Source of the DNA: Macrostomum lignano
Taxonomy: Eukaryota
Length of the DNA: 64,000 bases
Assembly: GCA_002269645.1 (NCBI GenBank)
Contig: NIVC01000896.1
Span: 1 to 64,000 of the forward strand
Direction: 5' to 3'
Shown: piece by piece, positions 4,279-54,050 of the stretch
Layout of the letters: each line of letters begins with the position of its first letter
Position numbering within the stretch: the stretch's first letter is position 1
Program-made: the position numbers and the translations under genes
The notes under the pieces: model-generated
The model's database searches: none
Told to the model about the DNA's origin: nothing
Seen by the model: the letters and a program-made list of their open reading frames with translations, nothing else

Positions 4279-4710
4279 GGTCACATGCGACCCGCAAAGC
4301 CTCTCTATCCGGCCCTCGGTCCTTTAAAACTTCACAATAGCAATCCGGTCCATAGGTTTGTCTCTCACCTCTCTCTTCTCAGCTCTCTTCTCTCACCTCT
4401 CTCTTCTCAGCTCTCTTCTCTCACCTCTCTCTTCTCAGCTCTCTTCTCTCACCTCTCTCTTCTCAACTCTCCTCCTCACCTCCCTCTTCTCAGCTCTCTT
4501 CTCTCACCTCTCTCTTCTCAGGTCTCTATTCTCATCTCATCTTCTCTCCTCTCCTCTCTCTTTTTCTCAACTTTTCCTCTCCCTTCCCTTCTCTCTCCTC
4601 TCTTTCTCTCCTCTCCTTTCCTACTTCATCTCCCCTCTCCCTCCCCTCTCTCCTCTCCTATTTGATCTCTCCACCCCATTGCCTCCTCTCTTCTCCTTTA
4701 TTCCCTTTAT
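4279..4710 (+). mobile_element. CT-rich hAT-type MITE, partial copy (intron of WSC copy 2)
   Basis: Head cacatgcg.cc.gcaaagcctct.tatccggcc aligns to the 22210 copy; absent from the paralogous intron of copy 3. Confidence 0.65.
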
Positions 4711-4778
4711 TTATTATTATTGTGCTATAGACACAACCATAGTGTTAACTACAGACACGACATATTTAGCTACCAAAT

Positions 4779-6255
4779 CTAAACTAAAGACTATTTAATG
4801 TCTTAAATGAATAATAATAATAATGAATAATAAAGAGAGGGGGTGGAGTGCGCGACTGAGGAAAGAGGCGAGAACGGAGAGCCAATCAGAATGCAGTCAA
4901 GGGAGAGAGAGATAAGAATAACAAGATTGAGCTAGACAGAGAGAGAGAGAAAACGGAGTAAACAGAGACAAGTGAAGGTGAACTAAGAAATGACTAGGAA
5001 AGTCGCGACACTCCCCCCAATTTGAATTTTCGAGTACCAATAGAAATTTGAATTAGAGTTCAAGAAACAACTTTAAAGCAAATTTAACAATGGTGTACAA
5101 ATACGACTAAGAATTTCAATACAAAACCTGTGGAGACTAGAGTGAATGCAAATTTGACCAAGAAATTTCACGTGTGCGATTTTAATGAATAAATTGTTAC
5201 GAGTATAACCAATGAAAAAACTGAAATAAGGCGCTTTTACCCTCCCGTTAATTTAAAAAATTAAATTAATTTAATTTTTTACATTGTGAAAGAAAAAATT
5301 GAATGACGAATTAACGAGGCGATCCGGCAGGCGATGAGCGAAGAGACGATCCGGCAGGCGAGCCCTGAGGCGCCCCGGCCGAGAATTTGAACCGAGAGAG
5401 ACCGAGGACACCGCAGGTCGCAGGACGCACCTCCGGCAGACGATGAGTGAAGAGAGTCGAGACGATCCGGCAGGCGAGCCCCGCGGCGCCCCGGCCGAGA
5501 ATTTGAACCGAGAGAGACCGAGGACACCGCAGGACGCACCCCCGGCAGACGATGAGGGAAGAGAGTCGAGACGATCCGGCAGGCGAGCCCCGCGGCGCCC
5601 CGGCCGAGAATTTGAACCGAGAGAGACCGAGGACACCGCAGGACGCAGCCCCGGCAGACGATGAGCGACGACTACATGTAGATGGAGCACCGGCAGACAG
5701 TCGAGACGAGATGAGATGGGATGAGACTGCTCCGGCCGACAGTTGACGAGATGGGAGGGCGCAGTCGACGAACGATGAGACGAGGAGACTGGTGGAGGGC
5801 TACGACGATGGCATGGCCTTTGCCAGCCTTACTGAATTGACTTATAATGACTAAATTATTTTACATTGGGCGCCATGTAGAAAAAATACTAAACTAAAGA
5901 CTATTTAATTGGAGTTAAATTGAAGGAGCAGGAGGAGCAGTCGCGACTTTCCTAGTCATTTCTTAATTCACCTTCACTTGTCTCTGTTTACTCCGTTTTC
6001 TCTCTCTGTCTAGCTCAATCTTGTTATTCTTATCTCTCTCTCCCTTGCTGCATTCTGATTGGCTCTCCGTTCTCGTCTCTTTCCTCAGTCGCGCACTCCA
6101 CCCCCTCTCTTTATTATTCTGGGCTCAACCCCCCAAAGTTAAATGTTCTATAAATATATCGGTTTGGGCCCTGCGCCCACTTACTGCTCCTCCTGCTCCT
6201 TCAATTTAACTCCAATTAAATAGTCTGTAGTCTTTAGTTAAGTATTTTTTCTACA
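4779..6255 (-). mobile_element. Non-autonomous LTR element (TRIM/LARD-like) with a rearranged, fold-back 5' LTR
   Basis: 3' LTR remnant 4779-5010 (sense start TGTCGCGAC) preceded by PPT GGGGGGAG (5011-5018); PBS TGGCGCCCAATGT (5875-5863, tRNA-Lys(CUU)-like) next to LTR end ...CTACA at 5876; near-complete LTR in opposite orientation 5940-6255; no pol motifs inside. Confidence 0.75.
5330..5665. repeat. About 3 copies of a ~112-bp GC-rich tandem repeat inside the LTR element
   Basis: gacgatccggcaggcgagccc...gagaatttgaaccgagagagaccgaggacaccgcagg repeated from ~5346, ~5461, ~5572. Confidence 0.9.
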
Positions 6256-17930: not shown

Positions 17931-20900
17931 TGTTGTACTTTTCGTAGTAACGAAGACGAATGCAAGATGCCGAGTTAGGAAGAGATTGTAGATGCATGCA
18001 GCGCGTATATTTTCCGCAGCGAAGTAGCTGGCTGCTATACTTAAAATATGAATAAGGCTTCACCCATAAACCATAGAACTTAAGTTCATACACAACACCC
18101 CCATATTTTAGCAATTAACCTGGAGAGAAATAAATGACTGTTTTCTATTTTGTCTAACGATCAAATAAATCAGGAATAGGTCAGCCGATCAGGGGCTTTT
18201 CGGAGCCTCTGACTTCGACGAGAAACTTGGTACTCGGGACTTTGATCGCTGGTTGTCTCCACTTCAGCAGGAGTCGTAGTCTCCATTTCCTTCTCCTTGC
18301 TGCTGCCAACATTGGCAGGTCCAGGCGAGGTAATCTCTTGTGAGTTCTCTGTAGTCCTTGGCTTGCATCAGATGCATGAACAACCCGTCCTTTGCTGTCC
18401 AAGTAGGTATTTGATCCATGAAGTCCTTGGATTTCTCTGGGACCTTGTCTGACTTTCCTTCTACGTTGATGTAGACAGGAATTGGGGTAGTTAGCGGTTT
18501 GTCCCATTCTGTAAAGGTTGCAGTGAGGCGCGTTCTTGGGCGTTGCATAAACAGTTGTGCAGCAGGAATCGCTCCTTCGGAATTCGGTGTAGTGTTCTTC
18601 GAAAGGCAGAATGATATCAACACCTTCTCACATTCGGAACCTATGTCATTACTGTCCTGCTTCAGAGTCACTTTCAACTCTTGGATAGCTCTCTCCACAA
18701 TCCCATTTGACTGGTGATGACCAGGTGGTGTTAGGACATGGTTAATTAGATTCTTCTTGAGAAATTCTGCGAACTCTTTTGATCGAAAATTGGTTCCATT
18801 GTCAGTCACAATGTCCCATGTACTTAAATGTTCGTCTGCATGCTGGAATAAGAGAGTTGGCTGTGAGATTGGACAGCTGATGTACATCAATCCACCGAGA
18901 GAAGGAGTCGATGAGAACCAAGAAGTGTTTCTCCTTGAAATATGCTATGTCCAGATGAACACGTTCGAAGAAGAACTTTGCATCTTCCCATGAATGCAGA
19001 TTTGCATTTGTTCGCTTTCTCGAATTTAGTTGGCAGGAAGGACACCTTTGAACGAAGCTATTGATCTGGGCGTCAATGTAAGGCCACCAGAAGTACTCTC
19101 GAGCTAGTCTGATCATGCGCACAATGCCCGGATGATTCTCGTGAAGAATTTGAAGAATTTCTCTGCGCATGGACTTTGGAGGCACGATTCGGATCCCTTT
19201 GAACAGAATCCCGTTTTGAATGGAGTATTCCGCCTTGGATTTGGTGTACGGAAGCAGCTGTTTAGAAATTTAGCTTGGCCAACCTTGAGTAACAAACTTC
19301 TTGATAATATCAATTTCAGGGTCTCTGGTGTTGGCGACACGCCGAAGAATTGTCCCAGAAGAAGAAAATTCTACGAGAGAGTTTACCTCCAGAAGATTGA
19401 CATCAAAATTTGAAAACGAAGTAGAAGCGTTTGTTGAAGGAATTCTGGACAGAGTAACTGCTGCGAGCATGGTGTCTCCTTTTGAGTAAGTGACAGTGTA
19501 GTCATAGGATCTGAGCAGCAATGCCCATCTCTGGAGTCTCGCAGAAACTCGGTCAGGAACTTTTGTTGTAGAGAAGATGTACTGCAAAGGTCTGTGATCA
19601 GAGATGATTGTAAAATGACGGCCTGCCAGAAATTGATGAAAATATTTTACACCCTCGATAATTGCAAGAGCCTCCCGCTCAATGTTGGCGTAGTTGGCCT
19701 CAGCCTTGGTCAAAACTCTGCTTCCCAGCCATACAACTTCTTTTTGGTTCGTGTCGTGGGACAGCACAAATCCGACTCCACTCTGAGAAGCGTCGCAGGT
19801 TAGAAACAACGGCCTTTTTATATCATAAGAAACGATTCGACCTTCCGTTACAGCAGCTTTCAGTTGGGAGAACGCACTCGAGTGAACGACAGTCCATTTC
19901 CACTGAACCCCTTTCTTTAGGAGGTAATAGAGCGGCTTGGCGATCATAGAGAAGTTCCGACAAAAAATCCCGTAGTGTCTTAAGGTGCATATAGCACTTC
20001 TCAATTGATCCCGGTCTTTTGGCTCTGACAAGTTGGATAGAGCTTCCACTCTTGCAGGATCAGGCAAAAGTTTCCCATCTCGGAGGAGAAATCCCAGAAA
20101 TGTGACTTCTTTCTTGCACTCCTGAGTCTTACGCTCATTGATCTTGAATCCATGCTTTTTCAGTTTTTCCTTGACTTGCACCAGGATCTGTCGATGCTGC
20201 TCCATTGTTTCAGTGCCTAGAATGATGTCGTCCTGATAAGAAGCAGTGCCTGGTATTCCTTTGAGCAAGATATCCATAACTTCCTGAAATATCAGTGGTG
20301 CTGCCGATATGCCAAATTGTAACTTGCGGAAGGCAAAATGTCCTACGTGGGTGGAAATACACGTAAGATCCTGACTTTCTGGCGTTAGGGGAATCTGCAA
20401 GAATGCGTCTTCGAGGTCAAGCACTGAATACACTTTCGAATTTGGGATCTTTTGAAGGATTTCTTTCAAAGTTGGCAGTCGATATCGATCTCGGTCTATC
20501 AGTCTGTTGAGAGTGACTGAATAGTCTCCATACAGTCTAATGGGTCTCTTTGATCCTTCTGGTTTCAACACAGGAACAATAGGGCACGATACCTTAGGCG
20601 AGTGAACTGGGTAGATGGTACCTGCACTTTCCAGTCTTTTCAGCTCCAGTTCAACCAAAGTTTTAATTGAGAACGGAAGGGATCTGGCAGGAAAGCACAT
20701 TCCATCGGTAGAGGCCCCGTCCTTCAGGCGAAAGCTGGCCTGGAATCTTAAATTTTCATCACACTGCACTGGATGGCACAGAAATTCGTCTACCGTCAAT
20801 AGGTTGAAGGCACGAATAAAATTTATTCCTAAAATGGCTTGACTGGATGGGTCCCCGACATATATGTCTCCGCATGCCGTTTTGCCGTTTCTCAGCTCAA

Positions 20901-22175
20901 TCGTGACGTCCTTAGCCATGCCTCGTACGGAAACTGAAGCTCCCCCGAAAACTTTGAGTGATCGAATGTCCGCGTCAACCATGTGCAATCCGGCTTGCTC
21001 TACGATGGTTACTGGCAAAATTGTTACCTGACTACCAGAGTCGACGCACATATGGACTGTGGAATCACCGATCGTGCAGACTATTTTCCAGAGTTCGTCG
21101 CATGGAGTAGCCTTGATCACCGAGTACACAGCTGAATCAGGTGGATCAGCGTCGGTTGCTTCAACTTCCGCGTACGTGACTTTCTTGCTGCCACCGATGT
21201 TGGACCTGCATGCTCTGGCAATGTGCCCGGTTTTTCCGCACTTGTGACATGTCGCATTACGGAACTTGCAGGTATTTCTAAGATGACCCGGGTTACCACA
21301 GGAATGGCAGCTAGACTTAGAATGATTCGGCGTTGTTGGCATTGGCCTGGATACCGTTGGATACTTTTGGTTGCTGCCGGTCTTCTTGTGAGTGGTTTTC
21401 TGCACTGCTGCGACGGTTTTGCTCGAATCAGTAGCTTGAGATACGGACTCCGATAAGAGACTATCCTTAACCGCAGTCTCTAGATCCAGCTTTTCCTTCA
21501 CTAGTAATTTTTGCTTCAGAGAATTATCAGCCAGTCCGAAAATATACTGAGAAAGAATTAACTCTTCTCGCAGGTTGCCGAATTCGCATTTGTTGGCCTG
21601 TGTCTTCAGTCTCTCCAAAAACTTTGTCACCGACTCACCCTGTATTTGGACCATGGTATGTAGCAGATGTCTGTCGTAGTGAAGAAGGCGCTTGGGTTTC
21701 AAGTGGCTCAGTACCGCTTCTTTGATGAAATCGAACGTACACTTTGTATCGTTTAAAATGTCTTCTGGCTGCACAAGTGTCTCAATCAGTGAAAATGCGG
21801 CATCTCCACAAGTAGCAAGTAGAACGGCTTTGCTCTGGTCATTCTTTTCCGTTGCGCTAATGTAAAAACCGAGGCGCTTGAAATACTGTTCGACATCGGG
21901 TAGCACAGCGGCATCTCCCCCAGTCGGAAGTCGAGTCCGGAAGACATCGGGATGAAGATTTGGTGACTGCAGTATCGTCCCGCGGCGAATTAAATTTTCC
22001 TCGTCGCCATGTTGTACTTTCGTAGTAACGAAGACGAATGCAAGATGCCAAGTTAGGAAGAGATCGTAGATGCATGCAGCGCGTATATTTTCCGCAGCGA
22101 AGTAGCTGGCTGCTATACTTAAAATATGAATAAGGCTTCACCCATAAACCATAGAACTTAAGTTCATACACAACA
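17931..22175 (-). mobile_element. Full-length Ty3/Gypsy (Mag-like) LTR retrotransposon in the intron of WSC copy 4
   Basis: LTRs 22010-22175 and 17931-18097 (TGTTG...CAACA; 2 substitutions + 1 indel); TSD TTAAC on both sides; PBS TGGCGACGAGG (tRNA-Ser(GCU)-like); G-rich PPT next to 3' LTR. Confidence 0.97.
18181..21906 (-). pseudogene. gag-pol polyprotein of the Gypsy element (Gag, protease, RT, RNase H, integrase)
   Basis: Two CCHC knuckles, VDSG protease, YQDD RT, TCDAS RNase H, HHCC and LIDSFS/VTDNG integrase; in-frame TAA at 19272-19270 and frameshifts near 18815 and 18436. Confidence 0.93.
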
Positions 22176-32490: not shown

Positions 32491-33193
32491 CTACTCCGGC
32501 CCGATCGCAAGTACGCGCACGGCCAGGTGGTTCACTACCTTAGCTTCTGGAACAATCAGCAGCAGTACGGGCACTCCATCCGGCTCAACATCTTCCAGTT
32601 CTCGAGTGCTCTGCCTGGCGCCAGGCCGCCAGACTACTGGCACCGGAAGACCTTCGACGAGCAGTCCATCGACCCGAACCCCAGAATTCGCTCCAACGTG
32701 TGGAACCTGCATGGCAAGCTGTGTGGCTTCAGCCGCTACGACGCTTAGGAGGACCCGGACCCCGGGTGCAGGTGAATCCTGGCTTTTGACAGATTCCTCC
32801 GTCGTGCAGAAAGTGCGAATGAAGCTGCCTGATGTTGGACGGAATGCACTCGCTATGCTGCATGAACTGAGCATGAAGAGCAACTGTCACAGATTTGGTG
32901 GCCTTTGGGTGCACTTCATCCGCCGGTTACCTTCTGTTTTTCCTGAAGAACCTGACGAACCATCAGCTATACCAGACTCCGTTGCTTGCCTTCGCAGGTC
33001 GCCAGTAGAGCACGCGCCGTGGCGCAAGTTCCGCATCGACGTCCAAGCGCTGATCCAAGCGCCAGGGACGGCCCACGTGCCGCTGTCCTACTTCCGATCC
33101 GCCAAGTGGGTGGGCAGCATCGTGGCGGGGGTGGAGGTCTGGGGCGAGGCCTCTGGGACCGTGGACGCGCACAACTACCGCCTGATTGGCTGA
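32491..33193 (+). pseudogene. 5'-truncated paralog of the 27382 gene (exons ~32491-32771, 32998-33193)
   Basis: DRKYAHGQVVHYLSFWN...KWVGSIVAGVEVWG...NYRLIG*; TGG>TAG stop at 32746-32748; same intron position; N-terminal part (to about residue 165) missing. Confidence 0.88.
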
Positions 33194-33839
33194 TACGCTG
33201 TGCGGCTAGCCAGATGAGATGAATAGGAGTACAATGAGGCCACGAGCTGGTTCCGGTTCAATTTTGAGTTCTTCTGCTTTCCTCATGATCGCGAACCCCT
33301 CCAGAAAAGTCGAGATGATGAAGATAAAAATTGCAGGTGTGTAAGCTGTTGGCAACAACCTTATTGCTGTGGTTTGGGAGACAGCGGGCTGGCAGACCTG
33401 AGACGGCCTCTGCGGGGCGTCGTTCACGCCTACCTGCGTAGAGAGGCCGGCTCCCTTGAGAGCTCTTGAGCTCGGCGTAAGGGCGCATGGCGCCCCTTGA
33501 CCGACTTTCTGTCTCTGGGCTCCTCTCAGGCCTCACACGGCCTCTCTCAGCTCCCAGGGGATGCAAGCCGCATCGGGACACTGCCGGGACGCGAACCAGC
33601 GGAGTACAAGCCGGCCAACGAGAAAAATTCAAGGCCTGACAGCACGCGCACCAACCTTCCGTGATTACACAGTCGAGACAATCGGGCGCCTATGAAAATT
33701 TGATGCTCAAAGTGAGAATGTAGGAAATCAGTTAAACGGTAAATGCGCTACTAAGTGCGACGACCTGGTGATACTAAGGGCAGCTGTACATGTACCAGCA
33801 TAGGTCATGTATATTTCGTAAGCAATTTGTACAGTAAAC

Positions 33840-35999
33840 GCTTCCCACTCTCGCAGAACCAGCACGCTTTCCGCGCGGGCAGGTCTACCGAGAGTGCCCT
33901 CCATGTCATTGTTGACTTCCTAGAGAGGGCCGTTCTTGGCAGCGGCTTTGCTCTCTCGCTTTTTCTGGACATTGAGGGGGCCTTCGACAACGTCATCTTC
34001 GAGGCCTTTTGCAGTGCCCTGGAATCCAGGGCCACGCACCCTCACCTTGTCCGGTGGATCATGTTCATGATCCGGAACCGCACTGTTGTGGCCCACCTGA
34101 ACGGCAGCTCTCTTTCGGCGCCTGTCCAAAAAGGGGGCCCCCAGGGCGGAGTTCTCACCCCCGTTCTCTGGAACATGGTCATGGATGAGCTGCTTTGCAG
34201 TGATCTCCACGACCCCATTCTCAAGGTGGGCTATGCCGATGACGTGACCGCGATCTGCGCGGGCCCCTCGGTTGACACCATCAGAGATCTTCTGCAGGGC
34301 TTTCTGGGACGAGCGGAGCGTTGGGCAAACCAATGTGGTCTTAGACTCTCAGAGTCGAAAACTACAGCGGTCATGTTTACCAGCAAACTGCTCTGGACCA
34401 TTAAGCCCCTCACCCTCTATGGAAAGAACATTTCCATGGAGAAGCAGGTCCGCTGCCTGGGCCTCACTCTGGACCACAGGCTCAACTGGACTCCGCACAT
34501 TCAAACTAAAGCCAAAAAGCCCTGGCTGTCCTGGCTCAGATCAGGCGCGCCGTGGGCACCACCTGGGGGCTCACCCCCAGGAAGCTGTGGTGGATTTACA
34601 CTGCAATCATCCGCCCCTCGATCAGTTACGCCAGCCTCGTGTGGGCTAGCGGTCTGGGCGTCAAGAGTAACCTCGACGCTCTCTACAAAATCCAGGGCAG
34701 AGCCTGCCGCATGACTATGGGCGCTCCACCCTCTACTCCTTTTGAAGGCATGAATGCCTTCCTCTGTGCCCCTCCTTTGGATATATATATCAAAGGAGAG
34801 GCGGCGAAGAGCACCCGGCGTCTTCTGGATGCTGGGGTGGCCTTCAAGAAAGTGCGGGCCTTTAAGAAGCGGTCGCTTATCCCGCACTCTGACCTCTGCC
34901 TCAAGGCTCTAGAAGAATGTGGCGGGCTCAACATCCTCTCGGACTCGATCCCAGCCACCCTTCTCCTGAGCCAAAGGTATAAGGTCACTATTCAGCCTCG
35001 ACATGAGGCGAGTGACAGCTGGAGCGATTCTGAAGTCCACTGTTACACTGACGGCTCTATGAAGCATGGTCTTTCAGGCTTCGGAGCGTGCGTCTTCTTC
35101 AAGGGAGAAGTGGCGTGGAGCTACTCCCAGCACACTGGGCTCAACTCCAGTGTTTTTCAGAGCGAGGTGCTTGCCATCAGCTCCTGCGCGGCAGAACTGC
35201 GCCGAAGGCAGCTTAGCGGTCGGAAGCTTATTTTTCACTCTGACAGCCAAGCAGCCCTTCGGGCCCTCTGCCGCTGCACCACCAGCTCCAGGTCCGTCCT
35301 GGACTGCAACACCCAGCTCAACGGGCTTGCGCTAGGCAACCAGGTAGAGCTCAGATGGATCCCGGGCCACGCCGGTTTCCTCGGCAACGAGCACGCCGAC
35401 CTGCTGGCCAAGGCTGGCTCCGCCGGCGCGCTGCTGGGGCCGGGCCCGGGGGCCCCCATCCCCGCCTCGGTGATCAACTCCCGCGTTAAGCGCTGGGCTG
35501 ACTCCGAGCATCTCCGCAGGTGGCACGACACCCGGAATTGTAGGCAATCCCGTGCGGCCGTCCCCTGCCCCTCCCCTCTCCTGCGTAGAGCCCTCCTCAG
35601 GCTCAACCGCAGAGACCTCAGAGCAGTTAGCATGGCCCTCTCCGGGCATGGCTGCTTCTCTCGCCACCGCTTCCTTCAGGGCCAGCATTTTATCTGCCAC
35701 TGCCCGGTTTTCACCAGGGCCAGGCTCACTCACCTCGGGCCAAACCCGGTTCTCTCCGACGTTTGCAGGCCCGAGAGCATCCCGCTGCTCGTCCGGTACC
35801 TCAGGGACACGGGACGAGCCGATTTCTTCCCCACTGTCGGTGAGGAGGATCGCGCTGCAGGCGAGACCGACGGGTCCCCCTGAGCGACTTCACTTCAACG
35901 GAAGTCATTGGTCGCCAGGGGCTAGCGGAATGGGCGGTCTCCTCCGCCTCCCCGCTGCATCCGCCGGACGCCCCCTGCAGCTAAGTCAAGTAAGTCAAG
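33840..35999 (+). mobile_element. 5'-truncated non-LTR retrotransposon with RT + RNase H (I/LOA-like group)
   Basis: QHAFRAGRST, FLDIEGAFD, PQGGVL, YADD, YTDGS, WIPGH motifs; 1-nt frameshift at ~34520; taagtcaag tandem tail. Confidence 0.92.
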
Positions 36000-38166
36000 A
36001 CAGTAAATGTACTTCTGTAGAGTAACCAGTCTCAGAATGGCGACATTCTTCGATGCAGTAGATTCAACGCCATTTTTGTACTTGTGATGAGGACGAACTT
36101 TTTTTCCAAATTTCACGCCCGCTCATGGGCTTCCAACTTGCTAGCCTACTAACAGCAGGCCGTGGGCATTTTTCTCCTTTTTTCTAATGTTCCTAGAATT
36201 CATACTAGCAGGATTTCTGTAGCATATCTGATTTGCCATACCTGTAGTTATAATAACATAGCGCGGTTTTTGCTACTTTTGGGGTCATAAATCATCGCTT
36301 GTGAGCTGGTCTGACAGCCACCTGCGCCTCACTCAGTGTTAAGGCTGGCGCCAGATGGTCTGAAAGGATGCGAGCGGTAGCTTTTTTTCTCATTATTTTG
36401 ACAGGCCATCAGATTTATGAGGTCACGGCTTATTGTTCGTGTTCACTCAGGCGTTTAACAGCTTTGACAGCTATGCGTTTTACCCCTAAAAGTACTTTGG
36501 GAATTAGCGATTAGCGATTTGTCTTCACTATCTTCACTTTCTACATAGTAAGACCTTTCCAATGCATATTTTTTCATTAATTTTTGTAATTCCAACGCAA
36601 AAGGTCATAAATCATTATGTAGCGATTTTGAGTGATTTATGACCGCACCTGGCGCATTTTTGTGGCCCCAAGGGAACTGATAGGATCTTTTGTCACGTGA
36701 GTTTGAGTGGCAACAATTGCTCAGCCAATCAGAAAATTCGACGTCAGTTATAACAAATCAGCTTAGCCAATCAGCGTCGAGGTGTTCCATTTTAACAAAA
36801 TTGCGGTCCAGTTAAACCGGTGTTTTTGGTCCGCTTGGACCACAACTGGCTTGGAACTCGGCTGTCACTGACTTTCTGCTGACTGGCCGGGAACTCGCTC
36901 TCTCTCTAGCCCGACCGTCGTTTCTTGATCCCCGGATCGCGACTCCCCCCCATCATCATCAAGGACCAATCCCCCGGTCGACAGCAACGATCATCAAGAT
37001 TAAGGTCATCACCTGCTAGCTACCTGCGAAGTTTGTGACAGCATCATCCTGGGTCTACAGCTGCGAAGCACTAAGCCGATTCGGTCACTGTGGAATACCT
37101 GGTCTCCGGCTGTTGAGTTTTTGATTGGTTGGGTGAGAGGCTACCTAGACTTGCTTGATTGGGTGATTCCTTATCTGTCCCCTATCTCAATAGCTGGATT
37201 AGGCGCACAATTTTGCTCATTTTGTTCAGCAGTGATGTTATTGAGGCAGAAATCACTTAATAATACTGTTAGTAGTCTGATTACTCCAATTCAATTTGAG
37301 GTGTGAAAATCACATAGATAGATAGACACAGACAGACCATTTTTAGTATTAGGAAGTGATTGAAAGAGAAGGTTAAATCTGAAATTTTTTATTGGTTTTA
37401 TTTCTTTGTTCGCCGATGGCTCAGATGAGTAGCTAAGCTGGTAGGCGCCGATCGCAGTGGACCAATGGCAAGGCAGTTCTCAGTCGATCAACCTATCAAA
37501 TCAGTTAGCGAGATTCCCAACAGTGCAAAATCGGCGCTAGAGATGCACTTCTGTGCACCCTAGATTCGCCAAGCGGCTCGGGTAATGAATCATGCGGCCT
37601 CTGATGTTCGAGTTAGTCTATCATCAGCGCTACGAGAGGCTAGTTGGCGCGCTGAAGGCCAAAAGTTCAGTTAATCGTATTTAGCAATGTAATAGTACAC
37701 GTAGCTACCCCATAGACTCGCCACTGCAAGAATCCCCTGCACAAGTCCCCTCTGTACCTGCATGGCCAATGCGATCAAGTCCCAGCAGTGTCCCTTATCA
37801 TCGGCTATGACTTCGAGATTGACAGCAAAAAGACACTAGTTGGCAGGTAAGTGCAAAGCCCCTCCTAGTCGGAAGCCCGATTTCGAAAGTTCCGGTTTGG
37901 TGAGCAATGACGCACGGGCTGGTGGCAGTGGGTTAGTTAATAATCTGCGGATTGCCTGATCTTTAACTTCGAAATTCTCCGTGCTTGTCTCTCGCTGTCC
38001 CTCTCTTGGCTATAGGACCTAGACTGCTCGCCACAGATCAAGCTACCATGGCGCTGACCATCTGACAGGACCAGTAGTCAGTACTATAGTACAGGGGCCA
38101 GTACTCTAATTTATTTATTTCTGAGACATTGAGGCCCGAAGGCCAAAAAGGCCGAAACCCATCATA

Positions 38167-40057: not shown

Positions 40058-40752
40058 TGTTGGCAAACTTTTTACCTCAAGGGCCAGATTGAAAATTCAG
40101 TGCCTGGCCAGAGTAGGGAGAGAGGAGAGGGAATCGAGAAGAGAAATAGGGGAAAAGAGAGGCGAAAAAATAATGGGGAAGAGAGTAGACAAGAGGAGAG
40201 ATGAAATAGAAGAGGAGAGAGCTGGAGAGGAGAGGAGAGGAGAGAGGAGGGAAGGGGGAAAGAATGGAGAAGAAAATGAAGATGAGAGGAGAGGAGAGAG
40301 GTGAGGATGAGGAAATGAGTGGATAGGAAAGAGGTGAGGATGAGGAGATGAGGGAATAGGAGAGAGGTGAGGAGATGAAAGGAGAGGAGAGAGGTGAGGA
40401 GATGAAAGGATAGGAGAGAGGTGAGGATGAGGAGATGAAAGGATAGGAGAGAGGTGAGGATGAGGAGATGAAAGGATAGGAGAGAGGTGAGGAGATGAAA
40501 GGATAGGAGAGAGGTGAGGAGATGAGAGGATAGGAGAGAGGTAAGGAGATGAGAGGATAGGAGAGAGGTGAGGAGATAGAGGATAGGAGAGAGATGAGAG
40601 ATGAGAGGATAGGAGAGAGGTGAGAGAGCCGAGAAGAGACAAAAGACCGAGCAGGCCGGATTGCTATTGTGAAGATTCAAAGGATCCAAGAGCCGGATAG
40701 AGAGGCTTTTCCGGCTGCATGTGGCCCGCGGACCGGAGTATGCCGACCCCTG
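40058..40752 (-). mobile_element. CT/GA-rich hAT-type MITE copy with an expanded ~30-bp internal tandem repeat
   Basis: Reverse complement of the 22210 copy at both ends (tgccgacccctg; tttacctcaagggccagat). Confidence 0.75.
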
Positions 40753-41083: not shown

Positions 41084-42081
41084 ATGTCAATAATTGACGA
41101 ATTGCAAAAGGCAGCACGCCACGGCAACAACGAACAGGTCAAGCAGCTGATCGCCAAGGGTGCCAACATTCACGAGTGTGATACAGCCCGTTTGACGGCC
41201 TTGCACAGGGCCACGGCCAATGGCCACATCGCTGTGATGACCACACTCATTGAGGCTGGCGCCGACATAAATTCTGAGGAGGATTTAGGTCGGACGCCTA
41301 TCTATTGCGCCTGTCAGAACGGCTTGTTACCGGCAGTGAACTTTCTCATCGAGAACAGAGCCGACGTGAATCGACCGCGCAAGAATGGCAGATCGCCGCT
41401 CTATGCTGCTGCAGCCAATGGCCATATTCTGGTGGTGGAGACCTTGCTTAATGCTGGGGCCCTTGTGGACCTGCCATCCAGCACAGGCTGCTCACCGCTG
41501 TACGCGGCCAGTCAAGAGGGTCACGTGGCCGTAGTGGAGCATCTGATTGGCGCAGGCGCTGATGCCAAGCGGCGGAACAACGATGGCTCAACTGCGCTGC
41601 ACGTCGCCAGCTGGTGCGGTCGCATAGCCGTAATTCAATCTCTCATTGACGCCAAGGTTGACGTCGACGCACAAGACGATTCGGGAAAGACGCCGTTGCA
41701 CGAGGCGTGCCTCGCCAAGAACGTGAGCGTCATTCGAATGCTCATCGACGCAGGCGCTGATGTTAATCGACAGGACAAGAAGGGCTGCACGCCGCTGTTC
41801 TTTGCTTCTTCAGTCGTGTGCCAGCCTGCAGTTCGCATTTTGCTGAGTAACGGTGCTCGACCTCAGCTTGCGTCCATTCGGCCTCCATTCTCGCCTCTGC
41901 AGGTTGCTTGCTTCATCGGATCGGGTGAAATTGCCAAAGCCATCCTGCAGCACAGTCCAGAGGCTGCAGAGCGTCTGCCTGCATCGTGTACATCGCTTGC
42001 TAAAGAATGTCTTGAGCAAGTCCCTAAACAAGCGTTGCCAATGGGTGAAGACATAAAGGACGAGCTGGGAGCAAAGGCTCA
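41084..42081 (+). CDS. Ankyrin-repeat + Mab-21/cGAS-like receptor (cGLR), exon 1 (about 9 ankyrin repeats)
   Basis: Repeated T/S-P/A-L-H/Y..A...G...V..LI..GADVN units; donor gtgagt at 42082, phase 2. Confidence 0.92.
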
Positions 42082-42989
42082 GTGAGTAGTGGTTAATTGC
42101 ATTGACATTCGTTGTAAATATGTGTTCTTTTTTTCAAATTATTTTCAAGTTATTGTCTCTGACTCTGACTGTACAGGGTTGAACGCTTGTCTGCAAACTT
42201 TTGCTGGATTCAGACCTTGGCTGGTTCCCATTACCCAATATTTCACGTCTTCGAGTTTTCATATCTCCAAAATTTCACATCTTTGAAATCTCAAATCCTC
42301 AAAATTTACATCCCTGAATTTCACATTCCCTAATTTTTTCACATCCCTGAAATTTTACATCTCCGAACTTGGCATCTCCAAGATTTCACATCTCTGAAAT
42401 TTCAGACCGTCAAAATTTCACATCTGTGAGCCATTGATTTGCTATAGAGCGCCCACCCCATTTTTCCGGCTCCGTACGTCAGCCGGCTTTCTCTCTCTAA
42501 CTCTCGCCCCCTTATCGGTACTCGTAGTAAGCAAAGTGTACATTTACGACCACCACCCCACGCAATGCAGTAGCCGACTAAAAATTAAATAAATAGCATC
42601 GTCTCGCCCACTGTGGCTTTCGTACTTCTTCGTGCAACTGCCAAATCATGCATTGAACTCTTACAACATCCACGAAATTTCACTTTCCCAAAATTTCAGA
42701 TAAAGTTTCTGATTTAAGCCCATAGACTATTTCGTGCCTTACGTAAGTTATTTCAACACTAGGACTAGCTTAAGAAGAGCCTAGCAGAGGGCATCAATGG
42801 TTTGTTGTCTGTGGCCAAACCAAATTAAATCATGTGGTAGAAATCGTGCCTGCCGTGTCGTAACAGATCAACTCAATCAAAGTAGACAATCGACCCGCAC
42901 AACTCCAAATTGACCCCCCCCCAAGCACAGAACTCACCAGTTGTCACTACCAATCACACCTTTAGACCAGAGTTTCTCTTCGGACGTCG

Positions 42990-43510
42990 GCTCTCATTGA
43001 ATTCGCCGTCCTTCCAGAGGCTCCATGGCTTTCCGCATTGGTTCAACAAGTAGTATTGCAGCAGCATGCTGAAAATAATTCTTCAACGCAGTAGCGCCAT
43101 AGCGATCACCACGATAATTTCGGATCTCTAAGATAAAACACTTAAGAACGTAGTTAAGATCGCACTTGCTCAAACTCGGATAGTCGTTTGCGGGTGCCAA
43201 TGGCAAGTCACTTAAGACAGCTTCGACTTCAGCAAGACTAAGTGATTCAAAGCAAATAACTCCAAAATTTCACAGAAAAGGTTTAGTAGAGATAGTGACA
43301 ACCTACTCACTCTTAAATACCCAACACTGTCGTTTTTGTGAACGGCATCAAATCAACATTTCTCTGTGGTTAAAATGTACGAGCGTACAATGCGAATATG
43401 GCCAAACGGCGTATAAAAATATTATTTCCGTTTACTTTAGTCTATGGTCTGAAGCATAAGCTTCGGACTCGCATCCGGACCTCGGCTTCGCCTCGGCCAA
43501 GAGACAAATC
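42990..43510 (-). mobile_element. Crypton-like (DUF3504-type) fragment in intron 1 of the cGLR gene
   Basis: DLNYVLKCFILEIRNYRGDRYGATALKNY resembles the Crypton/ZMYM domain N-terminus; hairpin-like ctcggcttcgcctcgg near 43478. Confidence 0.55.
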
Positions 43511-43620
43511 CTCTACTTTTGCTTCAGACCAATGAAATAAATAAAGGGAAATAACTTTCATGTAAACTTAAATTTGTCCTGGATCCCTATCTCAGTGGTA
43601 CACAATACTTTACTTTACAG

Positions 43621-43973
43621 AAGCGATGACGTCACAGACTCCCAGTTGAGCAACAGTCTGCACTCGCAATTCAAAAAAGCCGGATTCACTTGTCAAATGT
43701 CAGCTTTCCAGTCTGCATGCAGTGACGTCATGCAACAAATTGAGCAGAAGAGGCGAGACTGGGAAGACATCTTTGTCGTTGGCAGCTTCTCAGAGGGCTG
43801 GGGAAACAGTTTGAGCAGGCTGATCGGCAAGACGGATGTTGAGTCTGACATTGATGTGGCGGAGTTCTTTCCTGGCAGAATGTACCACCTTCGCGGCAGA
43901 TGTCGGTGCGAAAGTGTCAAGGAGGAGGATCTGGTTACCTACGATAATGGTCACGTGACGGTGACTGGACTAA
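43621..43973 (+). CDS. ANK-cGLR exon 2 (nucleotidyltransferase active-site motif)
   Basis: Acceptor tttacag; VVGSFSEGWGNSLSRLIGKTDVESDIDV; donor gtgagt, phase 1. Confidence 0.88.
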
Positions 43974-44265
43974 GTGAGTCATTCACGGGCTGCGTTGTAT
44001 TGCTGTTTCCGAAGGACAAAGACTTGATATTTGTAATCTAGCTACCAGAAATGAAAGATTTGATCGTCCAACAGATGGTGGAAGGCAGCTGGTGGGTGAA
44101 TTGCCTGTGACGCCGTCTGCCCAGAGCAAACAACATGCATACAGATACAGTAGCCGACATGTATCGAAGCAAATACACAAGGGCTACTGTATATGAATGC
44201 AGTACACCGGTACAAACTCACACAGGGGTGTGCACTTGCCCTGACAATTTTCATCGTCAGGCAGA

Positions 44266-44406
44266 GTAACACATCCACTGTGCCTTAGAGATGGGCCCAT
44301 ATGAGCATACGAACGGCTCAAGTAGCTCCTCGGTGACGCCCTAAATGAATGTGGCGCGACCGAGATTCGAACCCAAGACATACAAAGCAGCCGCGCTAAC
44401 CGCTAG
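44266..44406 (-). mobile_element. tRNA-derived SINE (same family as 48810)
   Basis: B box GGTTCGAATC; body gggcgt.accga.ggagctacttgagccgtt shared with the 48810 copy. Confidence 0.75.
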
Positions 44407-44539
44407 ATTATGGCTTTATAGATTATGGCTTTCATTGCCTTTTTGTCTTTGTCGAAAGAGAAATGGTAGCAGGGTAGCACTGGAAAACACGAAAAGATAA
44501 AAATTGAAATTTTTACCCCTGTGCCTTCACTGCTTCCAG

Positions 44540-45358
44540 CCAACAACCCAGCCCAGCCGGAATACGGCTCCTGCCTGAGACCGGCTTTTGATTTTGTCAC
44601 AGCCTACCGTTGCTGCAGCTATCCGCACGTCGAGGTGGTCGAAAACCCAAATCCCGATTCTCACCTCAGCGACTCACTGCTCAAATCGCTGACCCAATGC
44701 GTCCGCGAATCGAACTGCCACCTAGTGACCGCGGCGCCACCGGGCCAGGGCGGCCAGCTGCTTCGTGTAAGCACCACTTTCTTGGAAAGGCTCACCCTTC
44801 GCAGCCTCAGCGATGTGCAGGGTCAGCTCTTCATCCTGCTCAAATACCTCATCAAGAAGGTGCTGTCTGAGACTGTGAACGGTCTGAAGACCTACCACGC
44901 CAAGAGTCTTCTGTTCTACATGCTGGAAGAGACGGCACCGGAGGACTGGCAGCCTGGAAGCTTGGTGGCTCTTACGCGACAAGCACTCCAGCTGCTGCTA
45001 CGCAACATCAAGAGCAGCGGTAAAAGGAACAGCGAGTGCATGCCCCACTTCTTCATGCGCGATGCCATCGTGTACTTTAAGAGCGGACACAGTTCGAAGA
45101 AGGAGATTAAAGAAGCTATTAATGGCACCATCGATAACCTGCCGCGTCACCTTGCCCACTTCAAGGACTTCACCCTGAAGCCTGTGGACAGGCAGCCTCC
45201 GACATTCTACTTTCAACCATTCATGAACATTCCATGGATCAGGGTGACAGCTGGGTACAGCTCGGACGCTCCGCTGCAGTACCACGAGATATACGACTGT
45301 GTTCGCGATATCCTGGTCCGGCTGGCGCGCCAGGACACCCCCGAGCAGGCGGTGACAG
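44540..45358 (+). CDS. ANK-cGLR exon 3 (third acidic residue and Mab-21 helical lobe)
   Basis: FDFVTAYRCCSYP; RVSTTFLERL; FILLKYL; LKTYHAKSLLFYMLE...W; MPHFF; acceptor cttccag, donor gtgaaa, phase 1. Confidence 0.9.
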
Positions 45359-45589
45359 GTGAAATGATGATTGAATATTGTCTGCCGGCTCAGTATGTGT
45401 CTCATAGAATAATGCATTGCGTAGAGTATGAAGTATTCAATTCTTTAGCCTGTTTGCTTCTAGTTTGCTGAGGAGGCAAATGAAACCCGCTAGGAACGGT
45501 TCAAACCGATGCGTATGTCACTTCCCCCCTCACAGCTGCCTTATTTAGCCATTCTATCCACCCAAAACCTTGCATAAGCAGCGCGCCCT

Positions 45590-46345
45590 TATCTTCCCTC
45601 TCCCTCTCTCTCCCCTTCTCTCTCCCCCTCTTCCCTCCCTCTCTCCTTCCCTTCTCTCGTGCTCTCTCTCCACTGTCTCCCCCTTTTTTCCCCTCTCTCC
45701 CCCTCTCTCCCATCTCTCCCTCTCTCCCCCTCTCTCTCCCCTCTCTCCCATCTCTCCCTCTCTCCCCCTCTCTCCCCCTCTCTCCCATCTCTCCTTGTCT
45801 CCCCTCTCTCCCCTCTCTCCCATCTCTCCTTGTCTCCCCCTCTCTCCCCTCTCTCCCATCTCTCCCTCTCTCCCACTCTCTCCCCTCTCTCCCTCTCTCT
45901 CCCATCTCTCCCCCTCTCTCCCATCTCTCCCTCTCTCCCCCTCTCTCCCATCTCTCCCTCTCCCTCCTCTTTTTCCTCTCCCCATCTCTCCCTTTTGTCC
46001 CCCTTCTCTCCCCTCTCTCTCCTCTTTCTCCACCTCTCCCCTTCTCTCCCCGCTCTCCCTCTCTCCCTCTCTCCCCCTCTCTCCCCCTCTCTCCCATCTC
46101 TCCCTCTCTCCCACTCTCTCCCTCTCTCCCTCTCTCTCCCATCTCTCCCCTTTCTCCCATCTCTCCCTCTCTCCCCTCTCTCCCCCTCTCTCCCATCTCT
46201 CCCTCTCTCCCCCTCTCTCCCATCTCTCCCTCTCCCTCCTCTCCTTCCTCTCCCCATCTCTCCCTTTTGTCCCCCTTCTCTCCCCTCTCTCTCCTCTTTC
46301 TCCACCTCTCCCCTTCTCTCCCCGCTCTCCCTCTCTCTCCTCTGT
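45590..46345. repeat. ~750-bp homopyrimidine (C/T) minisatellite in intron 3
   Basis: Units such as ctctctccccctctctcccat; + strand is almost purine-free. Confidence 0.95.
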
Positions 46346-46369
46346 CTATGTCTCTGTCTATCTCTGCAG

Positions 46370-46944
46370 GCATCATTGACAGACTGCCCGATTGCGCCCA
46401 AACTGTCCGGGAAACTCTGCGCGCCATCGCCTTTGTCAAATACAACAAAAAAGATCACGCCATTCAAGTGTTGCGCAACATGAGAGGTCATTCTGTCAGC
46501 CGGCGAATCAATTCAGCGGATGTAACGGGCCAGCAAACCGTGACAGAGTTTGTGTGGCACCATCTCACCATCTCTGACTCCGCTTGGAAGTTCTGCTTCT
46601 TCATCAATGAACGACCAACTCTTCATTTTCTTAGCCAGTTTATTGCACACCTGTTTCCAGTCATCTTCAACGATTGTCACCAGTATTTCTTCTTCAACTT
46701 TGACGCCCTGAAGATGTGTCTGATGCTGGATTTAGTCGGTGATGTAGCGGACGATGCAAAGCACTGGTTCAAAGAGGTCTTGCTCAGCGAGGACGCCGAT
46801 GTTCAAGAACTGATCATGGTGATGCAGCACTGCCGGGACATCCCGCTTTTGCTCAGCGTCATTCGCAAGCACAACAGTGTCATTCTTGACCATCACGATT
46901 CAAGGGACAAACTGCTTGAGCTGATGGAGGAATTGGTGAGCTAA
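46370..46944 (+). CDS. ANK-cGLR exon 4 (C-terminal helical region, stop TAA); spliced protein 914 aa
   Basis: Acceptor tctctgcag; open frame to TAA; 998+353+819+575 = 2745 nt = 915 codons. Confidence 0.8.
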
Positions 46945-46956
46945 CTTGCTCTGCAA

Positions 46957-47190
<234 letters not shown>

Positions 47191-48809
47191 TATGTGACCA
47201 AATGAAGGGGTCGAAAGTGTATTCAGGGGCCCCGATTTGGGCCCTTTGAATAAAGAAAGGCCAAAAGCGATCGTGTACCCAATCTTGATAGCAAAAAATT
47301 AAAACTGAGCATATTTTTTCATTTTTCACAGATCCCTTTTTGGAAAAAAAGTTAGGAAGGGGTACAGTGTATGGGACGATTAAGGGACCAAGCTGTGGGC
47401 CCCTATTTTTCAAGGTGTGTGCAAAATTTTCTTAGGTCGATATACGAGTATTGCACGTTTGACCAGTTTTACATTTGACTCCTTTCCCACTTTGGGCCCC
47501 TAATTGGTCCCTTTTTGTGCCCCTTATTATTTGCCGTGTGCCCGTGTGCCATAGACCAGGATAAAATTCTTCATCCGCCTTCAGGGGCACAAAACGTACG
47601 GAGGTTTACCCCGTCATTGGGCACTCTGAAAGGGGCACAGTAAAAAAGCTACTACCCAGCTACCTATATGCATAGTTATTTGTCACGCAAATTCTCTCAC
47701 TAACAGCAAAGCTTCCTTGTCTCTTTCAGCCCGAACTTCAGGAGCAGCGGTGCTTGGAGACGCTGCAGGATTTGCGAGCTCGTCTTTTACAGTGACCTGA
47801 CAAATGCCCGGTTACAGCTTTTACGTGTTTATCAGTGGCGGCGCAGGGGGGGCAGAGGGGGCTACTGCCCTCGGGTGACCACCCCATCACCCCCCAAAGA
47901 GGTGAAATCCTATTTAAGTATGCTTCTATTGATTTTTTCGACATTGTTAAAATTTTAACCCTTTTTCTACATACTTTTTGTGAATTACTAATAAAATCCT
48001 GTAATAATTTCACCACTCCATACAACATGTTACTTACATGTTCATGTACATTCCGCTGCCTGCCACACCCGTTTCTCTCTACATTCCTACACCCTGTTCA
48101 AAAATCACATTAATACTGCCTCAGAGTGTCATTCCTGGGGTGGTTCCTATGATCGCTGGGATGGGGGGTGACCACCAACCACTGCCCCTGCGTTGCTTTG
48201 TTACTTTTTTTCTATACTATATTTTTACCCTGACTGTACTCGTACTTTTACCCCTCTACCCATGACAAATTGGCACGATTGATACATGGACCAGTGTATG
48301 GACCATGGACCAGATTTTTAGTGTCCTTTTTGTACTCTTAGTTTGCTTTTTCTGTGCATGTATAGTCAAGTAGAGCTTTCCACTAATGAATATGAAGATA
48401 TAGTAGTATGTTTAGCCATGGAGATCATTTATAAAGAGTTAGCCCGAGTGGTTTAAACTCCGTCCTTGAAGAATGTTGACGTCCCTGCCCTCCCCCTTCA
48501 CTGACTCTGACCCTGCCCACAAAGCCCATTTGCTGATCTGTAAAAGTATAAGTCCGGCATTCCTGTATCATTTCTCAACAAAGTGGACTGCAGAAGCCAG
48601 AGGGAATTTGATTGCTTGCATTGGGTACACATTATTCGCTCCCAGTCTGACTTCGAACCCGGAACCTTCTGGAAAAGGGTCATGAACTCTCTACTCATAG
48701 CAGGTAATTATAACTCTGATCCTTTCAAAGAAAAAGTTATGAACTAGTGTAGTAAACAATCAATTTATAAAGCTACTAAGTTCATAAAGAATGGCATTAG
48801 CACAAACAG

Positions 48810-53004: not shown

Positions 53005-54050
53005 CCTCTGGTGCTCTCTGGAAAGGAGAGTTCAGCCCTGCGGGTGGCCCGGAGGTAGCGCATGAGCTGGTTAAAGTTTTAGGGTTTGCACGCTTCAGTA
53101 ATAGATGTGTGTGGCCCGAGGTAAGTGAGTCTGGCCCGCGTGAAGGCGGGACAGATGCTGACGAAATGCTCAGCGGTTTCGTCACCTGAGTTACAGAAAC
53201 TGCAGATGGCGTTGCCCTGCAGGTACTGGTGCCTAGAGAAGCAGCAGTGACCTGAGAGGGTCATGGTGGCAGCCCGGATGTCTCTGCGCGAGAGGCGCAA
53301 GAGGAGCTTCCGGAGCTGGTGAGAGGGCTGAGGGACAGCGCCTCTGGATTGCCTGCAGTTCGTGCGGTTCGCCCAAGTCGAGCGGTGCTGAGTCCTGATC
53401 CACGCTTTGATGCGCGAGTCGATGACACAGCCAGGAATCGGGACAAGAGGTTCGGGGCCGAGAGAGGAGCCGGAGGCGCCAACTTTTGCAAGGGCGTCAG
53501 CCAACTCATTTCCTCGGATCCCCACATGCCCGGGAACCCACTTAAGGGTAATTTTGTTGGTGGGGCCCAACATGTTGAGGAGTTTGATACAGTCGAGGAC
53601 TGTAGCAGAGTTGGTGCTGCAGCCACTGATGGCGTGCAAGGCAGCTTGGCTGTCCGAATGGAAAATGTTGTTCTTCCCGGTAACACCAGTGGCGAGGAGC
53701 TCTGCGATGCAGGAGCTCTGCGATGCAGGAGCTGATGGCGAGAACTTCATTTTGGAAGACACTGGAGTTGACCCCAGTGTACTGAGCGTGGGTTGCGATG
53801 ACCCTCCCGTTCAGGAAGATTCCAACACCAAAACCGGTATTGGCTGACTGCTTAGAACCATCGGTGTAGCAGTGAAGCTTACCAGGGTTCCAGTGGTCAT
53901 TGATGGTATCGCGCGAGTCGATAGCTACAGAGTAGCGTTGTCTCAGGTTGAGCGTTGAGGCAATGCCATAGGTGAAGACGCGATTGGCCTGACACTCGAT
54001 ATATATAAGTTTCGACGCTGACTTGGCAGTATTGTAGGAGTTCACTTGCA
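53005..54050 (-). mobile_element. RNase H-bearing LINE 3' fragment, same clade as 33840
   Basis: YTDGSK, FQNEVLAI, HSDSQAAL, WVPGH, CRQSR, LSGH motifs; internal duplication and frameshifts. Confidence 0.88.

Follow-up and report, generated by a model that had tools for sequence, protein, structure and literature searches.

The stretch of DNA considered here (the window) comprises 64,000 nucleotides (nt) of the flatworm Macrostomum lignano, positions 1 to 64,000 of contig NIVC01000896.1. On its forward strand, at 41084-47795, lies a real and intact gene of five exons that encodes a protein of 933 amino acids (aa), in which an array of ankyrin repeats is followed by a core related to cGAS and Mab-21 proteins and by a large C-terminal extension. 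By this architecture the gene belongs to a known kind, the ankyrin-fused predicted cGAS-like receptors (cGLRs).

Gene structure

Neither a frameshift nor an internal stop codon interrupts any of the five exons, and every junction is of the GT/AG type and in frame (Table 1). The first-pass annotation, made from the letters of the stretch, had spliced four exons into a product of 914 aa with a gene end at 46944. The joining in frame with GT...AG borders holds, and the three junctions it named (42081/43621, 43973/44540 and 45358/46370) agree in position and splice motif with those of PAA65593.1, another M. lignano protein. The exon count, the product length and the gene end had to be revised, as a fifth exon had been overlooked and the gene runs to 47795.

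The sister copy PAA65593.1 (BOX15_Mlig024325g2, 933 aa) aligns without gaps to the corrected window product, with 94.7% identity and 49 residue differences, and its residues across the three junctions are those of the window gene. Past '...LMEEL' it runs on with PELQEQRCLETLQDLRARLLQ, and a tblastn comparison finds its C-terminus in exon 5 at 100% identity. The donor GAATTG|GTGAGC at 46935/46936, together with an exon coding for the last 21 residues of PAA65593.1, gives five exons and 933 aa; the 'VS*' that closed the earlier model is therefore intron read-through. PAA65593.1 was annotated from an RNA-seq assembly guided by the genome, in which trans-splice and poly(A) evidence fixed the gene ends (PMC5730564). 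Its locus has the same four intron positions and splice hexamers as the window gene. Introns 1-4 measure 2191, 589, 304 and 965 nt there and 1539, 566, 1011 and 794 nt in the window; the window copy thus differs in its expanded intron 3. In P0010, a more divergent paralog, the first two introns are ~105 and ~80 nt long and the third is lacking, and in a metagenomic relative (locus L001, on a Joint Genome Institute (JGI) contig) the third junction is likewise uninterrupted; the spliced window sequence aligns over this junction, without a gap, to the product of that locus, P0003.

Table 1. Exons and introns of the M. lignano gene and other features of the window.
Feature	Position	Strand	Content	Support
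Exon 1	41084..42081	+	start ATG; nine ankyrin repeats (aa 1-298, nt 41084-41977); beginning of acidic linker	Pfam Ank_2
Intron 1	42082..43620	+	1539 nt, GTGAGT...TTACAG; 16-nt tandem repeat inside at 42235-42425	
Exon 2	43621..43973	+	transferase N-lobe: G387-S388 43781-43786; 20-residue loop; D409-I-D411 43847-43855; C427-x-C429 43901-43909	
Intron 2	43974..44539	+	566 nt, GTGAGT...TTCCAG	acceptor at 44540 backed by paralogs and PAA65593.1
Exon 3	44540..45358	+	D468 44590-44592; PF20266 region 44830-45063; end of enzyme core at ~aa 660; C-terminal extension begins	
Intron 3	45359..46369	+	1011 nt, GTGAAA...CTGCAG; ~750 nt of CT-rich low-complexity repeat	
Exon 4	46370..46935	+	main part of conserved C-terminal helical domain	
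Intron 4	46936..47729	+	794 nt, GTGAGC...TTTCAG; (GTCT)n microsatellite 46957-47191; holds stop codon of the first-pass model, 46942-46944	
Exon 5	47730..47795	+	66 nt, preceded by TTTCAG; final 21 codons PELQEQRCLETLQDLRARLLQ, stop TGA	
LTR-retrotransposon polyprotein ORF	18264-21906	-	878 aa: zinc knuckle, aspartyl protease, reverse transcriptase, RNase H	
Integrase-core fragment	18264-18890		downstream of the polyprotein ORF	
Second retroelement	32600-36000	+	reverse transcriptase 33755-34714; RNase H 34552-35883	
AG-rich repeat	40211-40628		27/120-nt repeat upstream of the gene	
CT-rich repeat	45598-46365		complement type of the AG-rich repeat; fills intron 3	
(GTCT)58 microsatellite	46957-47191		in intron 4	
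RNase H fragment	53079-53762	-		

Is the ankyrin exon part of the same gene as the exons that follow it? The ankyrin array and the enzyme core lie in a single open reading frame (ORF) in many transcript-derived paralog models and in PAA65593.1, and in the window exon 1 joins exon 2 in phase, with neither a stop nor a new start codon in between. For the family, the ankyrin-enzyme fusion is established; for the window copy it is very likely. The converse, that the ankyrin exon and the Mab-21 exons are two separate genes merged by prediction, draws on the polycistronic precursors of M. lignano, which are resolved by trans-splicing, so that adjacent genes can merge in models (PMC5730564). It is contradicted by the in-phase junction and by TransDecoder products of boundary-trimmed transcripts, in which one ORF spans both parts in many paralogs, and also by P0010, whose intron at the domain boundary, at merely ~105 nt, is too short for a gene boundary. 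A merger of two genes is extremely unlikely. That these exons form one gene, as first proposed, is borne out by RNA-based models of the 95%-identical copy and of distant paralogs, the latter with introns of ~80-105 nt.

Could the window copy be a decaying or non-expressed duplicate? The CT-rich intron 3 might block splicing, which would truncate the protein at 45471 and remove the C-terminal domain. This intron has three times the length of its counterpart in the sister copy and is lacking from more distant relatives, the sole public model of the exact copy is partial, the exact full-length product has no record, and the gene is located in a retrotransposon-rich region. On the other hand, the five exons are open, the splice motifs are intact and the same as those of the expressed sister copy, and the ratio of non-synonymous to synonymous substitution rates (dN/dS) of 0.26 over the whole protein indicates constraint since the duplication. 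In our own assessment, moreover, a long polypyrimidine stretch ahead of AG fits an acceptor. Decay of this copy is unlikely, to a marked degree, as is the merger of two genes to a still greater one.

The sole public model of the exact window copy is UniProt A0A1I8IZF0 (P0001, 630 aa), the 90% identity cluster of which also contains PAA65593.1. It uses an acceptor 12 nt downstream of 44540, and so drops the residues NNPA. This acceptor was rejected as the main form because the paralogs and PAA65593.1 retain NNPA; the second AG, 12 nt into 44540-44551, may serve as an alternative acceptor or stem from an error of prediction. A0A1I8IZF0 and A0A1I8G0B9 (P0002), older models of the gene pair, stop at the same residue (...YFKSGH) within exon 3, and the window shows neither a splice site nor a stop codon that accounts for this shared end. 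For annotation, the right model is the one with five exons and 933 aa, and the full-length product of the window copy is new to the public collection.

The nucleotidyltransferase core and its active site

Residues 334-630 were modelled with AlphaFold2 (AF2) from a substring of A0A1I8IZF0, which equals the window gene minus the 4 aa of the alternative acceptor; 27 paralogs entered the alignment. The model has a predicted local distance difference test score (pLDDT) of 86.9 and a predicted template modelling score (pTM) of 0.87. The best 50 Foldseek matches in PDB are all cGAS, Cv-cGLR1, Sp-cGLR1 or MAB21L1, at probability 1.0, with E values down to 2e-8 and template modelling (TM) scores of 0.43-0.59. 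As modelled, the core has the bilobal cGAS/Mab-21 nucleotidyltransferase fold of the cGLRs. Comparison of profiles points the same way: 14 paralog cores aligned by hhalign to nine known cGAS/cGLR sequences (Table S3 of Li et al., 2023; PMC9980059) gave a probability of 99.0 and an E value of 4e-18.

Simple sequence searches reach less far. A PDB sequence search found Sp-cGLR1 (8gjy) at E 4e-5, with a match confined to the C-lobe. In Pfam, a profile check of the kind the first-pass annotation had proposed came out mixed: Ank_2 is strong, the Mab-21 C-lobe family PF20266 scores 23.4 bits, just below its cutoff of 24.1, and PF03281 (Mab-21 transferase) has no match at E<=1, so that assignment of the N-lobe depends on fold and profile-profile evidence. 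The helical Mab-21 lobe read from the sequence at first pass is upheld by this sub-threshold match together with the hits to 8gjy and to the cGAS/cGLR profile. The protein is a divergent Mab-21 relative, caught by profile-profile and fold methods and missed at curated Pfam thresholds. Membership in the OAS family was considered and rejected, as Pfam gives neither OAS1_C nor another OAS signal and no OAS protein is among the best 50 Foldseek matches.

A cGLR active site consists of hGS, [D/E]h[D/E] and a third acidic residue. The window protein carries G387/S388 (hGS), D409/D411 (SDID) and D468 (AFDFV), which in the numbering of the core are G54, S55, D76, D78 and D135, and these residues are predicted to form a metal site. 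The three Asp and the motifs around them, read correctly at first pass, are conserved: G387, S388, D409 and D411 are invariant in 14 paralogs that are 36-48% identical to the window core, and D468 is kept in at least 90%. A few paralogs (P0030, P0035, P0031 and P0027) lack the third Asp or more. D468 is aligned with D319 of human cGAS by hhalign (probability 99.0). A relaxed hhalign alignment runs end to end and places G387/S388 opposite cGAS G212/S213 and D409-I-D411 opposite E225-F-D227, the N-lobe part of this alignment being of low confidence. In the AF2 model a strand starts at D409-I-D411.

The spacing between the GS and DxD motifs is exactly 20 residues (S388 to D409), as the first reading had it, and is common to every paralog that covers the region. 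Within the loop a GW...G...SD pattern is invariant; at a pLDDT of 57, this loop is where the model has its lowest confidence. Long loops are also present in two other predicted cGLRs, #10 (~28 residues) and #15 (~31), by our own count from Li et al. (2023; PMC9980059), neither of which is flagged as active. The Cys motif that had been noted after DxD is present as C-x-C (C427 and C429) and is part of a conserved Cys/His set comprising H422, C427, C429, H444, C476, C510 and H511. The pattern of these residues suggests a metal site unlike the cGAS zinc thumb, to which the window protein has no sequence counterpart.

How does the core compare with proteins of known structure? With cGAS (4K97), Cv-cGLR1 (8GJW) and Sp-cGLR1 (8GJY) it has in common the bilobal fold, the GS motif, [D/E]x[D/E] and the third Asp, as well as the C-lobe motifs RxS(F/T)..E, KYL, SYH.KT and H(Y/F)F. 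Identity in the structural alignments, however, is just 11-23%, and the GS-to-DxD loop is ~9 residues longer than theirs. The window protein also differs in its near-neutral isoelectric point (pI; 7.3 for the enzyme core and 6.2 for the whole protein), its N-terminal ankyrin array and its large C-terminal domain.

Selection was assessed against PAA65593.1, at 95% identity; the substitution counts are small. The dN/dS ratio is 0.13 for the enzyme core, 0.39 for the ankyrin array and 0.45 for the C-terminal extension. The enzyme core is under purifying selection and is the most constrained part of the protein.

These results bear on whether the protein is a catalyst at all. As a non-catalytic Mab-21-type scaffold like MAB21L1/2, it would act by protein contacts of its ankyrin and C-terminal parts and give no nucleotide signal. 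MAB21L1 is indeed among the fold matches, MAB21L1/MAB21L2 (5EOM) share the fold and the Pfam C-lobe family with the window protein, the paralogs mentioned above have lost the third Asp or more, and five family members were not flagged active in vitro. MAB21L1/MAB21L2 are single-domain proteins, however, and Mab21L1-3 are without a predicted functional active site (Li et al., 2023; PMC9980059), whereas the active-site residues of the window protein are intact; GS, DxD and the third Asp are retained in nearly all paralogs despite 36-48% identity, and it is the enzyme core that is most constrained. The fold, the conserved active site and the dN/dS ratio together argue for a functional enzyme under selection and not a Mab21L1-type scaffold; the scaffold role is rather improbable, and filing the protein under the non-catalytic MAB21L1/2 type was rejected on the strength of its intact and conserved active-site residues.

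Paralogs, accessory domains and possible function

The window gene belongs to a greatly expanded family, whose members came here from Macrostomum and from unassigned metagenomic contigs only; a few of the metagenomic fragments carry no label or a wrong one. The paralogs, whose number the first-pass annotation had left to be counted, form more than 30 clusters at 90% identity; many are of 800-1000 aa with ankyrin repeats and Mab-21, and members range from ~800 to ~1600 aa, with one model of 3379 aa. All ten full-architecture representatives checked come from M. lignano. An exhaustive profile search yielded 808,032 hits, because ankyrin columns had entered the profile, and says nothing on the spread of the enzyme or C-terminal domains.

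Animal cGLRs have been catalogued by Li et al. (2023; PMC9980059), who list ~3000, some of them fused to ankyrin or tetratricopeptide (TPR) repeats (their Fig. 1C and Table S2). Table S2 includes cGLRs with Ank_2 under PAA accessions, and Table S3 has five PAA entries (#89-93), all from M. lignano, e.g. PAA86972.1. These constructs begin just ahead of the enzyme core, without the ankyrin part, and carry a GSFxEGWGNSL...SD[IV]D motif (PMC9980059). The ankyrin-fused M. lignano cGLRs, PAA65593.1 and #89-93, belong to the family of the window gene and have its architecture, its GSFxEGWGNSL...SD[IV]D motif with the 20-residue spacing and its C-terminal domain. Ankyrin-fused cGLRs being already in the catalogue, the window gene is not a new kind, and the suggestion that it could be an 'uncharacterised invertebrate immune signalling system' was an overstatement, all the more so as five M. 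lignano members have been screened. Most platyhelminths are without cGLRs apart from Mab21-like proteins (Li et al., 2023; PMC9980059). A literature search found no later paper on flatworm cGLRs. There are dozens of ankyrin-fused cGLRs in M. lignano and, in the other flatworms examined, none besides Mab21-like proteins.

The ankyrin array occupies aa 1-298 (Pfam Ank_2, E 1e-72), and the earlier figure of about nine repeats agrees with the nine counted by manual reading of the sequence. Comparison of the array with PDB by phmmer returned generic ankyrin-1/2-like arrays. RNase L, whose nine ankyrin repeats bind the OAS product 2-5A, is absent among the 60 PDB matches listed, and an RNase L-like affinity of the array was rejected, the matches being generic ankyrins. 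The resemblance between the two proteins is one of layout: each has a nine-repeat array in a protein tied to cGAS/OAS-type nucleotide signalling, but in RNase L the array is fused to an effector and in the window protein to a synthase, and phmmer shows no specific sequence similarity.

Differences between the window protein and PAA65593.1 are unevenly spread over the array. Twelve of the 49 are within aa 8-37 (41105-41194, ankyrin repeats 1-2), and dS is 0.19 over repeats 1-4 and 0.04 over repeats 5-9. Gene conversion by another paralog, or else diversification confined to this region, could explain the cluster in repeats 1-2. At the locus of P0010 (L002), the annotated start is immediately preceded by more ORFs with ankyrin repeats, at 4323-5950; the P0010 model may be N-terminally truncated, and the true protein may have many more repeats.

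At the other end of the protein, the C-terminal extension had been put at ~190 aa. It measures ~270 aa beyond the Mab-21 domain (661-933) and is kept in all full-length paralogs. Its structure was modelled by proxy on P0003, the closest contiguous homolog (52% identical). Over most of ~200 residues the AF2 model has a pLDDT of 85-98, with a helical domain and a small sheet. No significant structural match was found in PDB (best E 0.38) or BFVD (best E 0.13), and there is no match in Pfam; weak TPR-like and YscY fold matches were rejected, with TM below 0.3 over the query. Judged from the model, the region is a separate conserved domain without known fold, overlooked in the first reading, and it is the least explained part of the protein.

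How might such a protein work? The best explanation, and a probable one, is a ligand-gated cGLR-type nucleotidyltransferase producing a nucleotide second messenger. Among the innate immune sensors of animals, cGLRs form a major class. The predicted enzyme would be inactive at rest, with its activity gated by a ligand. Upon activation, the G387/S388 loop and the D409/D411/D468 metal site would join nucleoside triphosphates into a second messenger of innate defence, either a cyclic dinucleotide or a cyclic oligonucleotide. Binding of the ligand or of a partner, or autoinhibition of the enzyme, may fall to the ankyrin array, to the C-terminal domain or to both, and the 20-residue loop would sit at the position of the cGAS activation loop.

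The activator is more likely a protein or other non-nucleic-acid ligand than long double-stranded DNA (dsDNA) or RNA (dsRNA). Nucleic-acid-sensing cGLRs have a pI above 8.5 (Li et al., 2023; PMC9980059). The lower value of the window core, taken with the five ankyrin-less cores that were not flagged active with dsDNA or poly I:C, hints away from a simple dsDNA or dsRNA sensor.

Several points weigh against an active cGLR. The Pfam matches of the core are sub-threshold or lacking, and the N-lobe alignment to cGAS and the model of the GS-to-DxD loop are of low confidence, as described above. In the screen of 140 enzymes, in which 15 are flagged as active, the Note column is empty for all five M. 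lignano constructs (PMC9980059), and no family member is known to be enzymatically active. Expression of the window copy is presumed, its exact 933-aa product having no record in a collection of 15 billion sequences. Lastly, Schmidtea is reported to be without both cGAS and STING (2026 study).

Does the enzyme, if active, signal through STING? A search with the human STING ligand-binding domain returned only vertebrates and one hemichordate (Ptychodera) among 357 candidates, with a word prefilter unable to reach flatworm homologs. The supplements of Li et al. hold no STING sequences or Macrostomum counts, and their Table S5 is without a Macrostomum row (PMC9980059). An active nucleotidyltransferase might work outside the cGLR-STING pathway, with another product (e.g. 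linear 2'-5' oligonucleotides or a nucleotidylated substrate) or a non-STING receptor, possibly its own ankyrin array or C-terminal domain. The reported lack of cGLRs in most platyhelminths and of cGAS and STING in Schmidtea fits such a role, as do the absence of an M. lignano STING from the human-domain search (a weak test), the conserved extra domain without known fold, the atypically long active-site loop and the binding of 2-5A by the nine repeats of RNase L. The best fold matches, however, are cGAS and cGLRs, with no OAS in the top 50 and neither OAS1_C nor another such Pfam signal, and the array resembles generic ankyrin-1/2, RNase L being absent from the matches listed. M. lignano also keeps other antiviral genes, such as Mx, and this makes a retained STING plausible. 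Signalling outside the STING pathway is considered somewhat unlikely.

A bolder possibility, held only tentatively and judged unlikely, is that the Macrostomum family constitutes a self-contained, STING-independent sensing system, kept and enlarged in a phylum where cGLR signalling was otherwise lost. The C-terminal domain or an RNase L-like ankyrin array might then sense the ligand, or serve as receptor for the nucleotide that the enzyme itself makes, and the long loop might be a new activation switch.

To our knowledge, the few cGLRs with known activating ligands all respond to nucleic acids, and none of those fused to repeats has been characterised biochemically. If the ankyrin or C-terminal modules are sensors or autoinhibitors, the family would offer a route to non-nucleic-acid cGLR ligands and would allow cGLR signalling without STING to be tested. 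Transgenesis is possible in M. lignano. The interest of the family lies in the roles of these two modules, in its expansion in a phylum otherwise without cGLRs and in the experimental tractability of the animal.

Other features of the window

The gene is the only copy of its family in the window, where no other paralogs were found; Rfam and tRNA scans of the window gave nothing. Two sequences from outside the M. lignano genome are 52-58% identical to the window gene: the L001 locus on the JGI contig (3300040779, Ga0450782_029656), and MEE4247562.1 (P0008), from a metagenome-assembled genome labelled 'Kangiellaceae bacterium'. A splice acceptor in L001 stands at the same place as that of window exon 3, which marks this contig as eukaryotic DNA, and the presence of a family fragment in a bacterial bin is most likely contamination.

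Besides the gene, the window holds a long terminal repeat (LTR) retrotransposon polyprotein ORF with an integrase-core fragment, a second retroelement and a separate RNase H fragment (Table 1). Three low-complexity arrays lie at or near the gene: the AG-rich repeat upstream of it, the CT-rich repeat of the complement type in intron 3 and the microsatellite in intron 4. All three give rise to long, spurious ORFs on the two strands. Within the window, GC content is highest (0.61) at 34001-36000, where the second retroelement lies.

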